A stretch of DNA of 64,000 nt from Monocercomonoides exilis PA203 (Eukaryota; Protista; Preaxostyla), in contig LSRY02000036.1 in assembly GCA_001643675.2 (NCBI GenBank), forward strand, positions 992,001 through 1,056,000, in the 5' to 3' direction. The notes below the pieces were generated by a model. That model was not told the DNA's origin. It saw only the letters and a list, made by a program, of their open reading frames with translations, and ran no database searches. Below, one piece after another: positions 20,309 to 31,332 of this stretch; within the stretch, counting starts at the first letter, position 1, and each line of letters starts with the position of its first letter. Position numbers and translations under genes: made by a program.

Positions 20309-20855
20309 GGAAGTGAATGCACATTCTAGTGAACATGATTTTTGTTTTTTTCATGAGAATTGCCTTTTGTGGTGATTTGATGGTTGATTTAATGTTTGTT
20401 ATTTTTTTTTTATGAAAAAATGTGTTTTCATCAAGAATCTTTCTTTTTTTATTATATTTTGTGATTCCTTTGTGCAATCTATATTATTTGAATATTTACA
20501 ATGTATTTGTTCGTTTTTTTGTTGAATCTTTTTGGTTTTTCCATTTCAGTAAATCAACATTTCCAATTAGAAATTTAATTCAATGTTTTGATTTGCTTTG
20601 ACAAGTGAAGTTGTTTTATCAGAGTGATGATGTTGAGAACATAGAAATTGACATTTCTTTCGCTCTGAATTTTTGTTCCTTTTCTTTTTGTAAAATTTCA
20701 TCATTTTGATTTGTCACATAATTCTTTTAAGCAATTTATTATTTATCTCAAAATGAAATATTGCAAATCCTAACCCCTTTCCCTATTATGAATTTTAAGT
20801 TATTCGTTTCTTTGCTAATATTTTATTTTATAACTATTTTTGATTTTGAAATATA

Positions 20856-22486
20856 CACCAAAAATAATTCAAATTCGAAAAAAAATAATTCGAATTCGGA
20901 AATTAATAGGGTCAACTTTTCAATGGGACTTTTTCCATTATTGGAACTTTTTTTGTTTTTGCTTGCAAAATTCTGAGAAATGAGAAGTAGTTTTCAGCAT
21001 TTTAAAAATCCTTTTTAACAAGTTTTATTCTATTTATTTGCAATTTGTTTTTATATTTTTACTTGTTACACATTGAGAAATTTCGTTTTTTTGTTAAATT
21101 TAAAAGGACTTTTTCTAGCCAACTGGGAATCGCTCAAGAAATTGGGGACATGTTTTATATAGCATTTGCTTCGAACTATTAATCTTTAAAACCTTTTTTT
21201 TCACAAACATTTTTTTCTTGATTTTTTCGCATTTCAAATTTTCATCAACATGATAACATAAAACTGATTATTTCTTTATTAATATAATGAAATGAAAAAA
21301 ATAAAAATATGATATGAAAAACAAATACTTTAATAATGAAGTGTTGAAAAAATAAAATATTCTCATTTTCTATTTGTCAAGAATTTAACTTTGTTACTAA
21401 AGTTTGATCGAAGATCATTTTAAGTTTGTGCCTTTTTGTCTGTTTGAGACAAACAGAAAATGAGAATACAGATATCGCATAAAATACCGGACATCGCACA
21501 AAATACCGGACAAGATCGATATCTCAATAACCGCAAGAAGAAAAATTCTGATAATTTCCCTCAAAATACATCTCATCAATGCAAACTCATTTGATACACA
21601 AGACTGTTAAACCAGCTTCATTTGTGCTCAGAAAAAATTATCGATTGAAATCTCGTTGAAACTCAAAATCCTATTTCTCCGAGTATTAAATGATAATTTT
21701 TTCTGAGCACAAATGAAGCTGGTTTAACAGTCTTGTGTATCAAATGAGTTTGCATTGATGAGATGTATTTTGAGGGAAATTATCAGAATTTTTCTTCTTG
21801 CGGTTATTGAGATATCGATCTTGTCCGGTATTTTGTGCGATGTCCGGTATTTTATGCGATATCTGTATTCTCATTTTCTGTTTGTCTCAAACAGACAAAA
21901 AGGCACAAACTTAAAATGATCTTCGATCAAACTTTAGTAACAAAGTTAAATTCTTGACAAATAGAAAATGAGAATATTTTATTTTTTCAACACTTCATTA
22001 TTAAAGTATTTGTTTTTCATATCATATTTTTATTTTTTTCATTTCATTATATTAATAAAGAAATAATCAGTTTTATGTTATCATGTTGATGAAAATTTGA
22101 AATGCGAAAAAATCAAGAAAAAAATGTTTGTGAAAAAAAAGGTTTTAAAGATTAATAGTTCGAAGCAAATGCTATATAAAACATGTCCCCAATTTCTTGA
22201 GCGATTCCCAGTTGGCTAGAAAAAGTCCTTTTAAATTTAACAAAAAAACGAAATTTCTCAATGTGTAACAAGTAAAAATATAAAAACAAATTGCAAATAA
22301 ATAGAATAAAACTTGTTAAAAAGGATTTTTAAAATGCTGAAAACTACTTCTCATTTCTCAGAATTTTGCAAGCAAAAACAAAAAAAGTTCCAATAATGGA
22401 AAAAGTCACATTGAAAAGTTGACCCTAATTCAATTTCGTAATTTATAAATTCGATTTCGAAAAAAAACAATTCAATTTCGAAACGA
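20856..22486 (+). repeat. 21-bp tandem array A (consensus AATAATTCAATTTCGAAAAAA, 5 units, preceded by TA-CACCAAA), interrupted in unit 3 by the foldback element
   Basis: Units at 20863-20883, 20884-20904, 20905-20908 plus 22428-22444, 22445-22465 and 22466-22486. Confidence 0.8.
20909..22425. mobile_element. Non-autonomous foldback element: 734-bp inverted arms around a 49-bp spacer, GGGT...ACCC ends, TA on both sides
   Basis: Arm 20909-21642 is the reverse complement of 21692-22425. One mismatch seen near the outer end (caatgggact vs caatgtgact). TA at 20907-20908 and 22426-22427. No substantial ORF. Confidence 0.85.
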
Positions 22487-22929
22487 AAATCTTTTTTGAT
22501 TTGTGGAATGAATAACTTGTGTTAGGTGTTTTGAATTCTTTAAATTGGGTGATTTTTTTTGATATCATAAAAAAAGATCAAAAATCGAAAAAATATAATC
22601 TGTAGTGGTATTTATTGATCAAAAAGTTAAATTGGTATTTCATAAGTATTTAGCTTTTATTTCTGTCATATATATTTGTTTTATTTATTAATATAAAAAA
22701 TCATACCTTTTTGATAATCTTGGTGCAAAAAGAATTTTTTTTGATCAAGTTAAATAAAAATGAACCTAAAACTAATAAAGTTAAACCAACAAAACACATC
22801 AATAAGAAACAAAAGATTCTTAACCTATTGAACAAAGCTAATAAAAGGAAAAAACATTTAAAAAAACTTTAAAGAATAAAATTAATATGAGTATTTAAAT
22901 GTTTTTTAAAAAAAAGCATATGTTTTCCC

Positions 22930-25900
22930 TTAATCCAGCTGAAACCTCATCTAAATGTTTTCTTATCTGCTGATCTGCTCAACAGATTCTGCAAACGAAG
23001 ATTGTGCTATTTTGGAAACTGCAGTTAGTAAGAACACTTTACTCAACATCGAAACTTCTCTTTTAATTCTTCATTAAAAATACAGGTTTTATTTTTTTCT
23101 CGATTCACTACATGGTTTCCTATCATTTCAACTCGACATTTTAAAATTCTCCCTTCGTTAACTTCGTGCTTTTCCTAAGTTCCTGCTTTTGTTGCTTTGT
23201 GAAGAAATTATCATTGAATTCCCCTCATCCATCATTCGTCTTTTGTTTATGCCATTTCTTTCCCTCTTTCATCATCATCTTCCTCTATCTCTTGATCATC
23301 CTTTTCTTTCGTTTTTGCTTCCTCCTCATTTCACTCTCTCCATCATCACTCTCATCTCTCCAGGCGGAAACAATTTCTTTTGCTTCACAAGCAACTCACT
23401 TTGATGATAAAAATTGATGGCCTTCCGCTCTTCTTCCAAACCTTCTATCTTCTCTTTCTCTTCCTTCCGCTCTCGGCATCAGCAGCAATTAAACAATGGC
23501 ATGCCCAGTTCTTCACTCCCTTGAAAGTTTGACTCATTCTGAATTCTTTTCCCTTTCTCTTCAACTTAACTTGATCTTTCCAATGTTTGCTCTCAGAGTA
23601 ATATGTGAGCGCTTCATCGAAGCTTTCTGAGAAGTCTATAAGTTCTATATTATTGGCCGTTCTGTGAGCGTTATCAATCATCAAGAATTCAGATTGTGGA
23701 ATAAGTTGCAGCTTGGGAGAAGAAGAAGAGGAAGGGAATGAAGGAGAAGGAGCAAATAGCTGAGGAATTTATATAACCCTCTTTCAAATACGATTCTGAA
23801 AGAAGAAAATCATTCTTGTTGTTGAAGAGCGCACTCAGTGACTCAGATATGGCAGTTCTTCTCTTCTCATTGGACCATGTTCCCCTGTGGCTGTTTTGCC
23901 CCGCCTTTTACTGATGTGGAGAAGCTGCATGCGTTCTTCCGGCAGTGGGTGGAGCATGAAATGGTGGGATCGGTTTAACATAAAATTAGTACTGAGGCAA
24001 TCAATGAAATCTGCAGCAAAGGTGAGTTCAGGAAAGAACGCAGTCGAGATAAAGTGGGAGAATGACTTTGTGTGCGAAGAGAAGACGGACATAAACACCA
24101 TTCTTCTTCTTCTTCTTCTTCATTTCTTTTGTGATACTCTCCTTTTCTTCATCCTCTTCATCCTCCCCTCCTCCATGTCTTCTCTTGTTCCTCTTTTTCC
24201 CAACAGGTGCATACAGATTAAGCAAAGTGCCAGCAGTTATTATTTTCGCTATGTCAGTCTCCGTTGGTGAAGCCATTATGCCAAAAAGATTTGGCCCAAC
24301 ACACCAGCTCAGCAAACGACGCAGCAGCTCTTCCTTCGTGACCGTTGACTCGCTGTTCGCTTCTTTATCCTTCTCGTTTCTCTTCTCCTTCTCCTTCTTC
24401 ATCCAGCCCTCTTCCTTCAGCAAGCGCCTCGATGATTTCCGACGCGTTGTTCCGCACAATCGCCTGTGGTGAGAACATCAGCTCGACAAGCTCGTTAAAC
24501 AGCGCCTTGTCGAGCGAGCTGGCAAAAAGCTTGAACGACTTGTTGGTCAGCAATAGAAGGATGGAAGAAGCCTTGCCACTGTTTTCAGGGCGTGGTGGGT
24601 GCAGCAGGAAGCGGATGAGCTGGAGAATGCCGTAGCGCAGAAATGCAAAGTGGAACTCGGTGCCGTTGGTGATGAACTTGTTGATTACACGAAGAGAAGA
24701 AGAGACAAGAGGGTGCAAACGGAAAATTGAATGTGAATATTATTGTGTGTTTGTGAATAACGAAAACGAATGAGTGAAAAAGTGGGGGGGAAAAAGGAAG
24801 AAGAAAAAGAATTTGAAAAGAAAGATAGAAAAAAACTTGTGAACGAAATTTCTATTAACAGTTTCTGGTAAACCTCATGTATTTGATCAATTGCTTTGCA
24901 ACAGCATCATTCAGTAAATAAGCTTGATTCACTAAGCAGGATAATTGCATAATCAAAGCTATTAGTCCACCATGATTACTATTCATCATTTGAGAGCGAA
25001 CAAAAAATTTAAATAAAGATAAATATTTGAAAAGCAAAATACAGATTAACAAAAATAAATGAAACAATTAATGAAATATATTTTATTTTATAGAAAAAAT
25101 AACAATTTTCCATACAATTCTGGTTCACTATGTGGATCATTGAGTTTAGTCCCCTCAGCCTGTGGATGTTGTCGAAGCAGCAGACCACTAACTGTTCAAC
25201 AGGAAACGCACAGCGCAGCGAAGGTGGAACATCCATTGACAGAAAAGCGCTGCAAACGACACTGGCACACAGTTCAATCACATTCTGCAACTTCACTTTG
25301 AACTAACGCCCAAAGCTGTGCTTGATGAATGGCAGTGTTGGGGAGGGAGAGGAGAAAGAGGAGAATGAAAAAGAAGAAGAAGTTGATGATGATGATGATG
25401 TGGGAAATGAAGAAGAAGTGAATGAAGTTGATGTGCTTGCAGACGCAAATGTTGAGAAAGTGAATGGTGTTTCTATAATCTGTTGATGAATCCTTCTTCG
25501 ATTTTTGATTTCAGGAAGAAAATCTGAGCAAAAAGTGGTTAGAATCTTCACAGGCTTATTTTTCGTCTCAGCTTCTTTCTTCTTCTTTTATGAGAAACCT
25601 TTTTTCTGTGCCTTTTTTATGCATCTGCCAAATCCTTCTTTTCCTTTTTCTCTTCCTTCTCAATATCCGCACGAATTCCCTAGCTTGCTGTACATGTTGC
25701 GTGGTTCAGAAGGATGCTTTGTGGCTCAAATATATCCCCCGTAGCTTTCATGTTGCTGCTTGCAAATACACCTGCATTGCTCAACTGTCCTTCACAAGAA
25801 TCGCTCGAGGTGTCGGTATAGTCACAAGAGGTGGGAGCGAGAAGGAAGAAACAGAAAAAGAAGGAGAGGAAGAAGACATTTTTGATAAAGAGGTAGTGCT

Positions 25901-27415
25901 TGGGATAGATATGTCGAGTGTCTTCTTTGCGACCGAAAAGAAGTCAGTGAAGGGAGATGAAGGATTGAGTGGCTTCGGTGGAGTGTCAACAAGAACAGAA
26001 GGAGTTGACAATTGGATGTGAAAAAAGGGAGAGAAAGAGGGGAATGTAATTATCAAGGGGAATACATTGTTTTCGGTGTGCAGCTTCGCAGAAGAGTGTG
26101 CTGTTGCACGGGCAGAATGTCTCTGCTGTTCACTTCTCTTCTCCTTCGCCCTTTTTCTGTTGCTTCCTGCAGGTGCTTTGTATCGAAAGTATCAATTTGC
26201 GATACGGAAAACTCATCGGTCTAATTTGTCTTCATCTTTGTCTTTTGTTCTTCCAGCTGATTTCCTTTTTTATGAGTTGCATTCAACTTGCATTTGTATA
26301 TCTCTTTTTTTGCCTCTTCCATTTGAACATGCAATCATCTCTCTTCGCTCCTTGGAAGTGTAATAAACCGAGAAAATAATTGCGATGTGCTTAAAAGATC
26401 ATATCCCCTTCTCAAACACATTCACACATTCAGCACAGCCGGAGTGTGGAAGCCGTACGAAGTGCTTAAGGATAGCGGAATGTGCTGCTGCAAAAGAGGA
26501 AAGCAGTTCAAATGCGCGTCCAGCAATCCAACAGAAGGCATTTGAAGCGATAATGTCGATGTTAAGAGAAAGAAAACTGAATGAAATAACGATTGGTGTG
26601 TGCAATCAAGCTGCCGATTGAACAGTTAACGCAAATTTGAATATCGATGACTTAATCCAATGCGAAATGTGAAGAAATATCAAAGAGAAAGGAGAAGAAG
26701 GCGAAGAAGAGGCAAAGACGAAGTTCAAGTCGAAAAATGTGAATATATGTGGTGATAGAGAAATGCGCAATCCGTCAACTGGCGTTTCTGAAGAAGATAG
26801 AGAGGATACTTTGCGTGAAGTCGTTGATAAACCAAATCGTCTAGCTTGTTGGATAAACTTCAGATTGGTAAGAAAAAATTCAATCACAAAATTTTTGACA
26901 AACAGATTGTGGAAATCAATCTTGCTGTATTTCTTTGTAGTCTATTAACTTTCTTAATGCGATGTCCTCTTCTTCCTCTTCAAAAATAAAATATGTTGAT
27001 GTCTCATAATTTCTTTTCTTTTCTATTTTTCCTCTTCCATTCATCTCTTCTTTTACTCTGAAAAGTATCAAACTCTTCCTTTTCTTCACATTTCGCAATT
27101 TCTTCCAAAAAATCTTCTCCTCTCATAAAAAATACCCCTCTCCCATTTGAAAGCTTCACAATAGTCCTCTTCTTTCCCGCTTTTGCCCTCTTTTCTTTCT
27201 TTTCAAAATCCATTTCTCCAATCAACAATAAGTCCCCTTCATCATCTTCATCCACTTCTCTACATATTTTCAACATTATCTTCTCCAAATCTTCATATGC
27301 TCTTTCCCCATCTCTTTGTCTCCAAATTTTCTTTCATTCAAAAACCCTTTTTGTAATATTCACTTTCAAAAATACACTCAACTCTCTCCCTCTCCCACAA
27401 ATAATCATCTTCCAT
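22930..27415 (-). pseudogene. Fragmented large gene with helical/ARM-like segment
   Basis: Chain of same-strand ORF fragments (27004-27288, 26606-26887, 26399-26605, 25781-26056, 25303-25551, 24365-24718, 24028-24459, 23445-23684) broken by stops and frameshifts. ARM-like GILQLIRFLL..ALFNELVELMFSPQAIVRNNASEIIEAL. Limits approximate. Confidence 0.55.
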
Positions 27416-27429
27416 CTATTCTCTGCCCC

Positions 27430-27990
27430 ATGTCCCTCCTGTATCTTGCGTTGATGAGATAAACATCAAATACGACTTTTGGTGGTTGAGGATATTATTA
27501 AAGGAGATGATCATGCCAAAAACAGAAAAAACACCTCTGGACATCCACCACAATGTGTACGGGCTGAGAAGACTCTCCAGTGAGATACACGATGTATTTT
27601 GTGGAGATGCATTCAGTGCTGTATTCAACCATTCTGAGGCTGAAATGGAGAGATTGATTTATTTTTGGAATGATGATGGCTGTAGAAATGAAGCTGTTTG
27701 GCAAAAAACAGTCGAAGGGCAGTTTGGTCTTTATTTATTTTCTTTATATGAATATTTGCCTGTTGACTGTTTTTGTGTTGTTTTCAGGGCAGGAGGCGGA
27801 AAGGAATGAAAATGAATGAAAGCGGGATATCTCGTTGTGCATGGTGGCTATCGAGTTGAGCCAGCAAATTCATATGGAAAGTGCTCGGGATGAAGGGATT
27901 GGGAAGGGAATTGGAGATGATATTTTCATATGCAAAAACAAGGATATTTTTCAATGATGAAAATGGAATTTGAGCAGAAAACATGAATTT
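27430..27990 (+). pseudogene. Relic of a beta-helix surface-protein family gene
   Basis: Broken frames containing GIGKGIGDDIFIC, similar to GNDIFC in the 17732-20308 protein. Confidence 0.3.
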
Positions 27991-28936
27991 CACATTTTTC
28001 TGAAGGAAAGGAAATCAACGCAATTGAAGGAACTTAGACTTCCGGAAATGAAGGTTGCTGAATTTTCTGTTGAAACATCAAAATTTGATTGGTTTCATTT
28101 AATATTAATCGATTTCAACTTTTCTTATTCTATTCTTTTTCAATAACATTATTTAACAAATATTTGGAAATGAGATTATTTTATAACGTTATTGTAATTA
28201 TTGTTATCATGTTTTTAAACCCAGAAAACTTATGTTTTGTTCTGTTCATTTAAGTTTCGATTTTTTTTTGAATAATTTTTTTAAGTTTTTTTCAAAATTT
28301 GTAATTAAAACAATTGGAAACAAATTAAAATTAACAAATAAATAATAATAATAATAATTAGAGCAATATATTTGTGAGATCATCACTTTTGTTTTTCTTT
28401 TCAAAGCAACCCTTAAGGAAAATAATTTTTGATCAAACGTCGGAATTTTTTATGATATCAAAAAAAATCACCCAATTTTTATCTCATCTGCAAATTTTGT
28501 TTATCAATATTTGAAAAATGGCGCATTTTCATTTTAAAATTTTCTTTCATTTTGAATGAAAATTTATTGATTGAAATTAATTTGAAATGGAAATAAATAC
28601 ATTTTCATGGTTAAAACCGATATTATCCAAAAATTTTCCTATGAAACAATCACATTATTGTGAAGAGATAATTCAATAATCGTGATTGAATTTTTTCTAT
28701 TTTTATTTGGTTATTCAACAGAATGAATTTTTATAAAATTATTATTATTTGAGTGATGAATTACAAAAATGAAAAAATAATTTTAAAAAATTGATTTATT
28801 GATTGTTGCAATAAAAAAAACAGTTTTCCATGAGTAATAAAATTTGATTGGTAAAAAAACAACGTGAACTTTTCTGAAATCCATTCTCGAGATAAATTAA
28901 AATTTTCGGTTTTAAATGAATTTCGAAATTGAAGTA

Positions 28937-30938
28937 GGGTTATAATTTTATCTTGACCTTTTTTTTATCAAGACCTTTTTTATAATTAATCATTAACTTT
29001 TCCCACAATTTCATATTTTTAAAGATTTTTAAGTTTATATATGAATTCAATAGATAAAAATAAATACATTTTGAAACAAACCCAATTTCGCATGGGGGGA
29101 GATGGGGGGGTTTAGCCCCTTCGTTGAACTTCTGTGTGGAATTGGAGGGTTACATGGGGAATAAAACCTTTTGTTTGTGAAAAATGTAATTTTTTGATTT
29201 TTTTTAAATTCATTTCAATTAAAAAAATAAAAAATTATTGTGATCTTAAAAATATTAATAAAAAAATGTAAATGGCAACAGAAATAAAATTAAAAGAAGG
29301 TCAGAAAAAATTACAGAGAGCAATGTCTTCACGCAAGTTCAGGAAATACCACAGTCGGTTGGAGTGAATTGCTCACATCGTTGTTGATGGAGTTGTTCGC
29401 ATTACGGATGCTATTAATTCCAAGGAATTCAGCCGAACAGGAATAAAGAACGCAGTTGGAGCTCTGAGAAAAGGAAGGCTGGTTGGTGAAGTTAGCAGAC
29501 CTGCAGCAGTAGTGGGTGAATAGGAACAAAGAGTTTTAGACATTATTCACATTGAAGCAAAGTCTGGAACATGTCTCACTTAAAAAAAACTAAAGAATTG
29601 GTTTGTTCAATTTTTATTAATATGTTTTAATCATTTGTTTTTCAGATAGAAAATGTTATAAACGACAACGATGATGAAGACGCAACATTTTCCGAAGTTT
29701 CAATGTCAGCCACGTATGGCTTTGCCAAGCGTCATCCTGAGATGATGACTGGAACGCCGAAGAATTTGGACATTAACAGACTGGCTGTTTCGTGCAGAAG
29801 TGTTTTTTAACCCTGGTATAAAACACTCGACGAGCTGCATGAAAAGTTCCATTGCAATTCAGCTTTGATTGTAAATGTCGATGAATCTTCAACGCGCGTT
29901 CCCACAGACTCAAAACGGCTTGTAGTTCATACAGCAGATTCAAAAGCAGGTTTTACGAAAGAACCACAGAGGATGATCAATTCAACATTCGTAGCAGCTG
30001 TTGCAGCGGACGGATATTCCTTTCCTTCTGTCATTTTGTGGCCAAGCGTAAACCTGCCAGATGAGCTGAAATGCCTGTTATCTCCAACGCTTGAGATATG
30101 GGCAAATGGAAGCGACTGGATGGATAACGAGTGCTTTAAAAGGCATGCTCTCACCGTTCTTCTACCTTCTGTCATCGAAAGAAGAAAGCGCATGTCACTT
30201 GAAAACGAACACATTCTTCTCCTTCTTGGTTCTCACACTTCTCGCGCAGATCCATCGATCTGGCGAGAATTCCAAAAGCAACAAGTCGACGTTTTAACCT
30301 TTGTGCCACACAGCACACACCTCTGTCAACCACTGGACAGAGGTGTGTTTGCTGTGTTCAAATCTGAACTGACAGACAAATTTGAGGCTCCATCTTCTTC
30401 TTCATCTTCCTCCAAACGAGCAGCAATTTCCGACGTTCTGCCTCAAGCCATCCACACTGCATTATCACCTTCTGTAATTCAGAAAGATTTCGTCTGCAGT
30501 GGTGTTCTGCACAATTCTTCTGGGCCAGTTCTTTTGAAACTTCCCGAATCTTCAATTTACACTCTTCCATCCCTAAGAAACAGATTCAACTTTTATGGAA
30601 AAGTGATAGCCGACGAAAATCTTTTAGAGAAATGGGAAAATCATTTGAAAATGAATATTGAAAGGGAAAATGAAATGGATGAAAAGGAGAAAGATGAAGT
30701 GAAGACTGTTGTGGATGAAAAGAAAAAAATAAAAAGAAAATTTCTTCATTTGAAAAACGATGATTCTGAAGATGAAAAGAAAGATAATTCATTAAATCGA
30801 GGTGAAGGAAAAAGGAAAGTTATTAGAAGAATTAATTCTGATTTTGTTTTCTTTTAATCATGTTGTTTTTTTTAATTTTTTTCACTTCATTTTTTTGGGT
30901 CAGAATAAAGAAAAAGGGCCAGGATAAAATAATAACCC
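28937..30938 (+). mobile_element. pogo/Tigger-like (DDE_1, Tc1/mariner superfamily) DNA transposon, about 2.0 kb, degenerate
   Basis: Imperfect TIRs GGGTTATAATTTTATCTTGACC... and ...GGCCAGGATAAAATAATAACCC. TA at 28935-28936 and 30939-30940. Encloses a transposase pseudogene. Confidence 0.82.
29272..30857 (+). pseudogene. pogo-type DDE_1 transposase pseudogene with one intron
   Basis: Motifs IVNVDES, LLLLGSHTSR (second catalytic D replaced by G) and PHSTHLCQPLDRGVF. The 5' part from ATG 29272 has in-frame stops, a frameshift near 29581 and a GT..AG intron at about 29601-29645. Confidence 0.85.
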
Positions 30939-31332
30939 TATTCATTTTCGAAATTGAATTATTCTTTTTCGAATTTGAATTATTTTTGGTGTATTATCTG
31001 AATCGAATAAGCTTTAAACAATTGTTTTCCAGGAATCAGTTCCATTTATTTGTTGTTTTGCCTTGCTTTTATTCAAAAGATATTTGAATTCTTGAGCACT
31101 TTATAAAGGATAAATAAAACAACTTTTTGCATAAAGATAATTTCAAAGCAGCTTCTGTTCTGCTCTGTAAACGAAATAAGACAGTAATAATAAAAGAACA
31201 AACTTTTGATTATCACTAAAAACTAAAATATTTGGAATTATAAAATAACCTGAAGAAATGAAATGTCTTAACATAATTTTTTTAAAACAATAATTTTTTT
31301 CAAATTTAAATTCATTTTCTTCTTTCTTAATT

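Follow-up and report, generated by a model that had tools for sequence, protein, structure and literature searches.

In the genome of the protist Monocercomonoides exilis PA203, positions 20,856 to 30,991 of the analysed window (a stretch of 64,000 nucleotides, contig LSRY02000036.1, C32:992001-1056000 in the examined assembly of 82.3 Mb and 101 contigs) are a single copy of a short transposon, about 0.7 kb in length, which has been enlarged to 10.1 kb by three nested inserts. The host belongs to a family that we named CACC, and each of its ends carries a subterminal array of 21-bp repeat units. Two of the inserts, a foldback element and a pogo-like element, occupy mirror-image TA dinucleotides in the third unit from either end, and the third insert, of 5.9 kb, lies between the two arrays. 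We interpret the locus as an ordinary transposon nest combined with a possible weak hot spot, which would lie at the TA of the third repeat, 52-56 nt inward from a CACC terminus, a reading to which we assign a probability of roughly 50%. The foldback and pogo families are ordinary TA inserters with almost no specificity beyond (A)TA, and family-wide homing to the array, which the initial annotation of this stretch had put forward, is refuted. The components of the nest, in window coordinates, are the following.

20854-20855, no strand: TA at the left end of the CACC host, a presumed TA duplication, with its partner TA at 30992-30993.
20856-20908, forward strand: outer part of the left CACC host end, comprising CACCAAA, units 1-2 and unit 3 as far as its TA; 92% complementary to 30935-30994.
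20909-22425, no strand: foldback element with GGGTCAAC ends, non-autonomous; TA at 20907-20908 and 22426-22427.
22428-22546, forward strand: inner part of the left CACC host end, comprising the remainder of unit 3, both further units (4-5) and sequence outside the array, with the AATT target last; 88% in the alignment to the family member L023.
22547-28473, no strand: GGGTGAT-ended element, a decayed copy, with 28-nt perfect terminal inverted repeats and an AATT duplication at 22543-22546 and 28474-28477.
28478-28936, reverse strand: right inner part of the CACC host, extending as far as the TA in the third unit from the right; 89% in the alignment to L023.
28937-30938, forward strand: pogo-like element with GGGTTAT...ACCC ends and a decayed transposase gene; TA at 28935-28936 and 30939-30940.
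30941-30991, reverse strand: outer part of the right CACC host end, comprising the terminus and units 1-2, recognised by inverted-repeat and terminus matches.

The sequence TACACCAAA together with the 21-bp array constitutes the terminal inverted repeat plus the subterminal repeats of an abundant family resembling miniature inverted-repeat transposable elements (MITEs), which bears out an early suggestion that the array might belong to another transposon. The 27-nt CACC terminus (TACACCAAAAATAATTC...) has at least 443 genome matches at no more than three mismatches, against 0 for the reversed control, and these termini form facing pairs 0.3-1.4 kb apart. Among 57 ends sampled from 30 fetched loci, all follow TA or a sequence that differs from it by one base, and 55 pass uninterrupted into 21-bp units; we infer that this TA is a target duplication rather than part of the end itself. 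The family has two distinct inner end types, and the window copy possesses one of each in the correct orientation. With the inserts removed, this copy aligns at 88-89% to a complete CACC member of 974 bp (L023), and its right inner part (28478-28936) is 79-91.6% identical to 25 other family copies. The two arrays of the window are the two ends of one CACC element, a relationship absent from the initial annotation. Their outer flanks form a 60-nt inverted repeat that is 92% complementary with the TA and GGGT included.

At both host ends, the TA used by the insert occupies positions 52-53, where the first C of CACC is position 1, in the third unit, as had been described from the window alone. 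Excision in silico of either insert together with one TA restores an in-register array behind TACACCAAA on both sides; the earlier count of five units holds for the left end, whereas the right end contains three units followed by degenerate sequence. Both inserts have GGGT at the start, ACCC at the end and TA on either side, and their left termini match at 16 of 26 positions, all as originally noted. The foldback region matches foldback loci only and the pogo region matches pogo loci only, and the absence of internal similarity reported for the pair is thereby upheld; the two inserts represent different families and separate events.

An arm-to-arm gene conversion that copied a single insertion to the other arm, where one of the copies was later replaced, is an extremely unlikely origin of the mirror-image arrangement. 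It draws support from the foldback elements, the arms of which are 97-100% identical within a copy and only 80-92% identical (8-20% different) between copies (L032-L059), a pattern which suggests that the two arms of each foldback copy evolve in concert. The inserts, however, are of different families without internal similarity, and the two CACC arms of the window differ at 5 of 53 positions, where each carries variants common to other members; the right arm, for example, is identical over its first 49 nt to a CACC end in L002. The arms of the host thus have independent family variants and therefore have not been homogenised, and their inner flanks are two different family-typical end types.

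The 5.9-kb insert between the arrays, not recorded in the initial annotation, starts with GGGTGATTTTTTTTGATATCA. The host alignment is interrupted at 22546/28474, where the perfect inverted repeat lies, and removal of the element with one AATT gives the exact host sequence of another CACC copy (L005). The genome contains at least 1863 termini of this GGGTGAT-ended family with GGGTGATTTTTTTTGATATCA ends, always behind A-N-N-T, and paired ends stand 5.3-6.9 kb apart with matching non-palindromic 4-bp duplications (e.g., ATTT and AAAT). Since the interior is repeated genome-wide at 65-88% identity, the element is a member of a family and not cargo. The window copy has no open frame longer than 170 aa, and ten frames gave no Pfam match above the cut-off. 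The 4-bp A-N-N-T duplication would be unusual if this family is pogo-related.

These observations bear on the reading of the whole 10.1 kb as a composite cargo transposon, in which a large interior captured between the CACC ends would be moved by them in one piece, and which we regard as very unlikely. Intact CACC ends with flanking TA do bound the entire 10.1 kb, and recognition of these ends is possible in principle, but the interior resolves into three nested transposons with their own ends and duplications plus approximately 0.7 kb of family-typical host. Moreover, no other copy of such a composite was seen, and the junction censuses described below place array-insert junctions only here and on contig C36. 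Two variants were rejected: a composite built from the foldback and pogo outer ends requires the same prior double hit and has no second copy, and an interior serving as cargo is ruled out by its identity as a repeat family of its own.

The initial annotation had envisaged a target-specific, array-homing pogo-like system, with the TTTCGAAA cores as the feature recognised by the transposase. One insertion from each of three GGGT-ended families lies at the same array TA, which is in line with such a system; nevertheless, we consider it scarcely credible, as over 95% of each family's copies reside at unrelated TA sites without the array motif, and more than 99% of array junctions are empty. The array forms the flank of 0 of 33 other TA-flanked foldback termini and 0 of 27 other pogo right termini in the fetched loci, and pattern matches gave approximately 100 additional flanks of the pogo family, which are diverse TA sites. 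Other copies at unrelated TA sites were the very outcome named in advance as speaking against homing to a minisatellite. Foldback and pogo flanks show a single visible bias, an A immediately preceding the TA (55-70% vs. 35% background), and the cores are not required. Empty targets, for which a search had been recommended, are plentiful: at least 1081 strict unit junctions are uninterrupted, as are at least 862 junctions of the same spacer type as the insert sites, and the exact empty-site sequences of both window insertions occur uninterrupted elsewhere in the genome. The empty junctions include a satellite-like run of the CACC unit on contig C21, about 13 kb across the matches listed. With three or four sites occupied against these junctions and about 443 ends, occupancy of the target is not substantial. 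Array insertions account for 1 of about 88 foldback copies, 1 of about 40-75 pogo copies and 2 of about 62 copies of a fourth family described below, so that in none of these families does the majority of copies lie in the one target.

A third insertion at the unit-3 TA lies elsewhere in the genome. A whole-genome junction census with the pattern of array core, 2-16 nt and TAGGGY returned exactly three matches, namely the two junctions of the window and C36:1354888, all at the unit-3 TA counted from the CACC end. A second census, anchored on the CACC terminus and allowing 5-35, 36-66 or 67-97 nt between it and TAGGGT, again found these three sites alone. At the C36 site, a diverged CACC terminus and units 1-2 are followed by an insertion at the unit-3 TA; the insert (G000:C36:1354909) begins with GGGTGATTATTTTATCCGGAC and belongs to a different family from both TA inserts of the window. 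This fourth, TA-duplicating family (TA-GGGTG[GA]TTTTTTTATCCGGA) has about 124 TA-flanked termini and element sizes of about 1 kb and 2 kb; approximately 100 of its flanks were read and are diverse and unrelated to the array. Another of its copies occupies the TA of unit 2 in a CACC end of contig C5 (C5:754353). The contexts on C36 and C5, like that of a pogo copy on contig C33 discussed below, were read from short matched strings of the pattern searches. Among array-like candidates of a looser census, three sites on contig C91 as well as C91:415396 proved not to be arrays; the other candidates are C7:958278, C10:1268571, C61:42148, C48:283690 and C91:387493.

Under uniform use of TA sites, about 0.02 unit-3 insertions are expected, given approximately 225 copies of the foldback, pogo and fourth families, 443 sites and about 4.2 million TA sites (50.6 per kb), and three are observed. 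In 25 sampled host loci, unit 3 contributes 28 of 235 strict junctions (12%), or 17 of 112 (15%) of those of the same spacer type, and the occurrence of three of four array insertions at unit 3 has a post-hoc p value of about 0.006 for a pre-named unit and of about 0.02 for any unit. We tentatively read this recurrence as a real preference for unit 3.

The principal alternative is pure coincidence, in which the second insert reached the mirror TA by chance among the 48 TA sites of the host and the C36 insertion is also fortuitous; we regard it as possible, if less probable than the hot spot. The excess over uniform TA use just given argues against it, and even at 20-fold clustering the other units should receive several times as many insertions as unit 3, whereas only one such insertion was found. 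Several points nonetheless favour chance and weigh against a hot spot. Transposons do cluster: in the neighbourhood of CACC and foldback copies, there is roughly one GGGTGAT-type terminus every 8 kb, two CACC MITEs on contig C9 have a foldback element between them, and a pogo element has entered a CACC MITE on C33 at another, non-array TA, 76 nt from the end. Under a weak flank matrix, the mirror site holds about 4-5% of the insertion weight of the host. The candidate was picked from a whole genome, of which 46% is repetitive and 35% 'unclassified' repeat in the published Oxford Nanopore Technologies assembly of M. exilis (PMC8767320), and look-elsewhere effects are large. The idea of a hot spot was itself generated from two of its three events; the independent data amount to the C36 insertion, a hit at unit 3, and the C5 insertion, a miss at unit 2, which do not reach significance by themselves. 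Very few sites are occupied, namely 3 of about 443 ends, and the insertions involve about 1% of each family's copies. Hundreds of units that share the local sequence have never been hit, and the mechanism of a hot spot is conjectural. In addition, a hot spot alone leaves unexplained why two of the three hits fall in one copy. As to method, the censuses are blind to insertions in non-array parts of the host and miss ends with a mutated anchor or core, and the counts from genome searches are lower bounds. Public reads of one sample, available as short unitigs, provided neither a confirmation of the junctions nor an empty allele, and the joints that appeared to skip an insert derive from paralogous uninterrupted arrays.

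With the weak hot spot as our preferred reading, the foldback and pogo inserts at mirror TAs would reflect a mild preference for the third-repeat TA inside CACC ends. Such a preference may arise from the shape of the DNA at the edge of a phased A-tract array or, alternatively, from proteins bound to the ends of the CACC host. A stronger version, in which pogo-type transposases from several families are steered to one fixed position in the ends of another transposon family, its third subterminal repeat (52-56 nt from the terminus), appears doubtful; in that case, array-edge shape or contact with end-bound proteins would guide the insertion, both ends of an engaged copy would become targets at once, and eukaryotic Tc1/mariner-group elements would provide an example of position-specific integration beside a heterologous transposon end.

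Subterminal direct repeats such as those of the CACC ends bind the transposase in many DNA transposons, and pogo-like elements are usually regarded as nearly random TA inserters. Known cases of hot spots or targeting include Tc1 and Sleeping Beauty at bendable TA sites, Tn7 at attTn7, P-element homing, and Ty1 and Ty3 at Pol III genes. The candidate site in the CACC array resembles them in the reuse of one TA at a fixed position relative to a defined feature, here the end of another transposon; unlike them, its use is rare (about 1% of copies) and common to three families, and it amounts to a candidate known from three events. A genuine hot spot at unit 3 would be a naturally occurring case of position-specific target choice by pogo-like elements, and the 60-bp transposon end would offer a simple substrate for the study of target choice. 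If the locus is a nest only, its description is a routine annotation of an almost uncharacterised repeat landscape. The four families defined here are the CACC MITE, the foldback family, the TA-duplicating pogo family, and GGGTGAT families with TA or ANNT duplications.

The 2-kb insert in the right end is assigned to the pogo superfamily because it combines a DDE_1 domain, a TA duplication and short inverted ends, the hallmarks of this superfamily (PMC7386202). Its DDE_1 match (PF03184, Pfam) covers 29865-30854 with E = 7e-11, several in-frame stops precede the domain, and the ends GGGTTATAATTTTATC and GGGTTATTATTTTATC, the two being inverted, form short terminal inverted repeats. In a tblastn search of the window with the pogo transposase, this element alone matched. 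The window copy is 86-93% identical to 27 other copies, and genome-wide the family has 39 termini of the right end and 114 that resemble the left end; TA precedes 27 of 29 other right termini and most of the approximately 100 further flanks. Some other copies have frames of at least 482 aa that are open to the edge of the locus (L069:3-1496, L074:1584-3029, L075:1584-3029 and L080:1-1446), one of which gives a near-full DDE_1 profile with E = 6.5e-15 (L080); judging from these frames, the family may still include functional transposase genes. In the frames of 482 and 498 aa, Pfam detects DDE_1 only and no N-terminal helix-turn-helix domain of the CENP-B_N, HTH_Tnp_Tc5, HTH_psq or a similar type, in sequences that leave the locus edge and are incomplete at the N-terminus. 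The four long frames are uninterrupted across the spot where the window copy appears to have an intron. The pogo superfamily of the IS630-Tc1-mariner group includes Tigger, pogoR, Fot and others, with lengths of 1.2-5.2 kb (Gao et al., 2020, PMC7386202). The window family agrees with it in the length of the insert, the DDE_1 domain, the TA duplication, the short imperfect inverted repeats and the open frames of other copies; it departs from it in that the window copy is a pseudogene and that the readable, N-terminally incomplete parts lack a helix-turn-helix domain recognised by Pfam.

The foldback family is represented by 176 termini in the genome, with TA flanks and a usual length of 1008 bp. 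In the window copy, the arms measure 736 nt, are 100% complementary and enclose a loop of 49 nt; the element has no open reading frame longer than 71 aa, and its arm is 80-92% identical to other foldback copies. The window copy is longer than usual because another palindromic repeat, which recurs at L023:57-458, sits at its centre (about 21400-21935). This repeat is a palindrome nested exactly in the middle of a palindrome, and in L023 it adjoins a CACC MITE. Like the CACC host, the foldback family is short, non-coding and of high copy number, with inverted ends and a flanking TA as target duplication, presumed in the case of CACC, and both families thus satisfy the usual description of MITEs and resemble the MITEs and foldback derivatives of the Tc1/mariner/pogo group (Stowaway-like elements; Emigrant with Lemi1). 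They differ from these in that the body of CACC is almost wholly a 21-bp array, which has also undergone a satellite-like expansion on C21, and in that foldback arms are near-identical within copies while the copies diverge.

Foldback copies show several further peculiarities. An exception to the high identity between arms is the copy in L043, with arms only 82% identical. In L055, the sequences flanking a foldback copy (1301-1500 and 2512-2711) are mutually inverted, with 83 nt at 98.8%, and inverted flanks also surround foldback or CACC copies in L026, L018/L019 and at C91:383153, 385015 and 386052. Such a palindrome beyond the ends of the element points either to insertion at the centre of a palindrome or to extension of the arms by copying. 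In L037 (about 1470-1500), another GGGT-ended element harbours a foldback copy 17 nt in from its end, and the ends of two GGGT-ended elements stand 3 bp apart at L085 (about 1530-1545), where elements are stacked.

Two observations concern the CACC array itself. The satellite-like expansion of the 21-bp unit spans C21:1073085-1086484, within which like units recur at a higher-order spacing of about 61 to 82 nt. In L024 (1583-1840), a short GGGTGAT-like MITE sits at an AATT within a CACC array, 82 nt from the terminus, and a CACC end has again been invaded.

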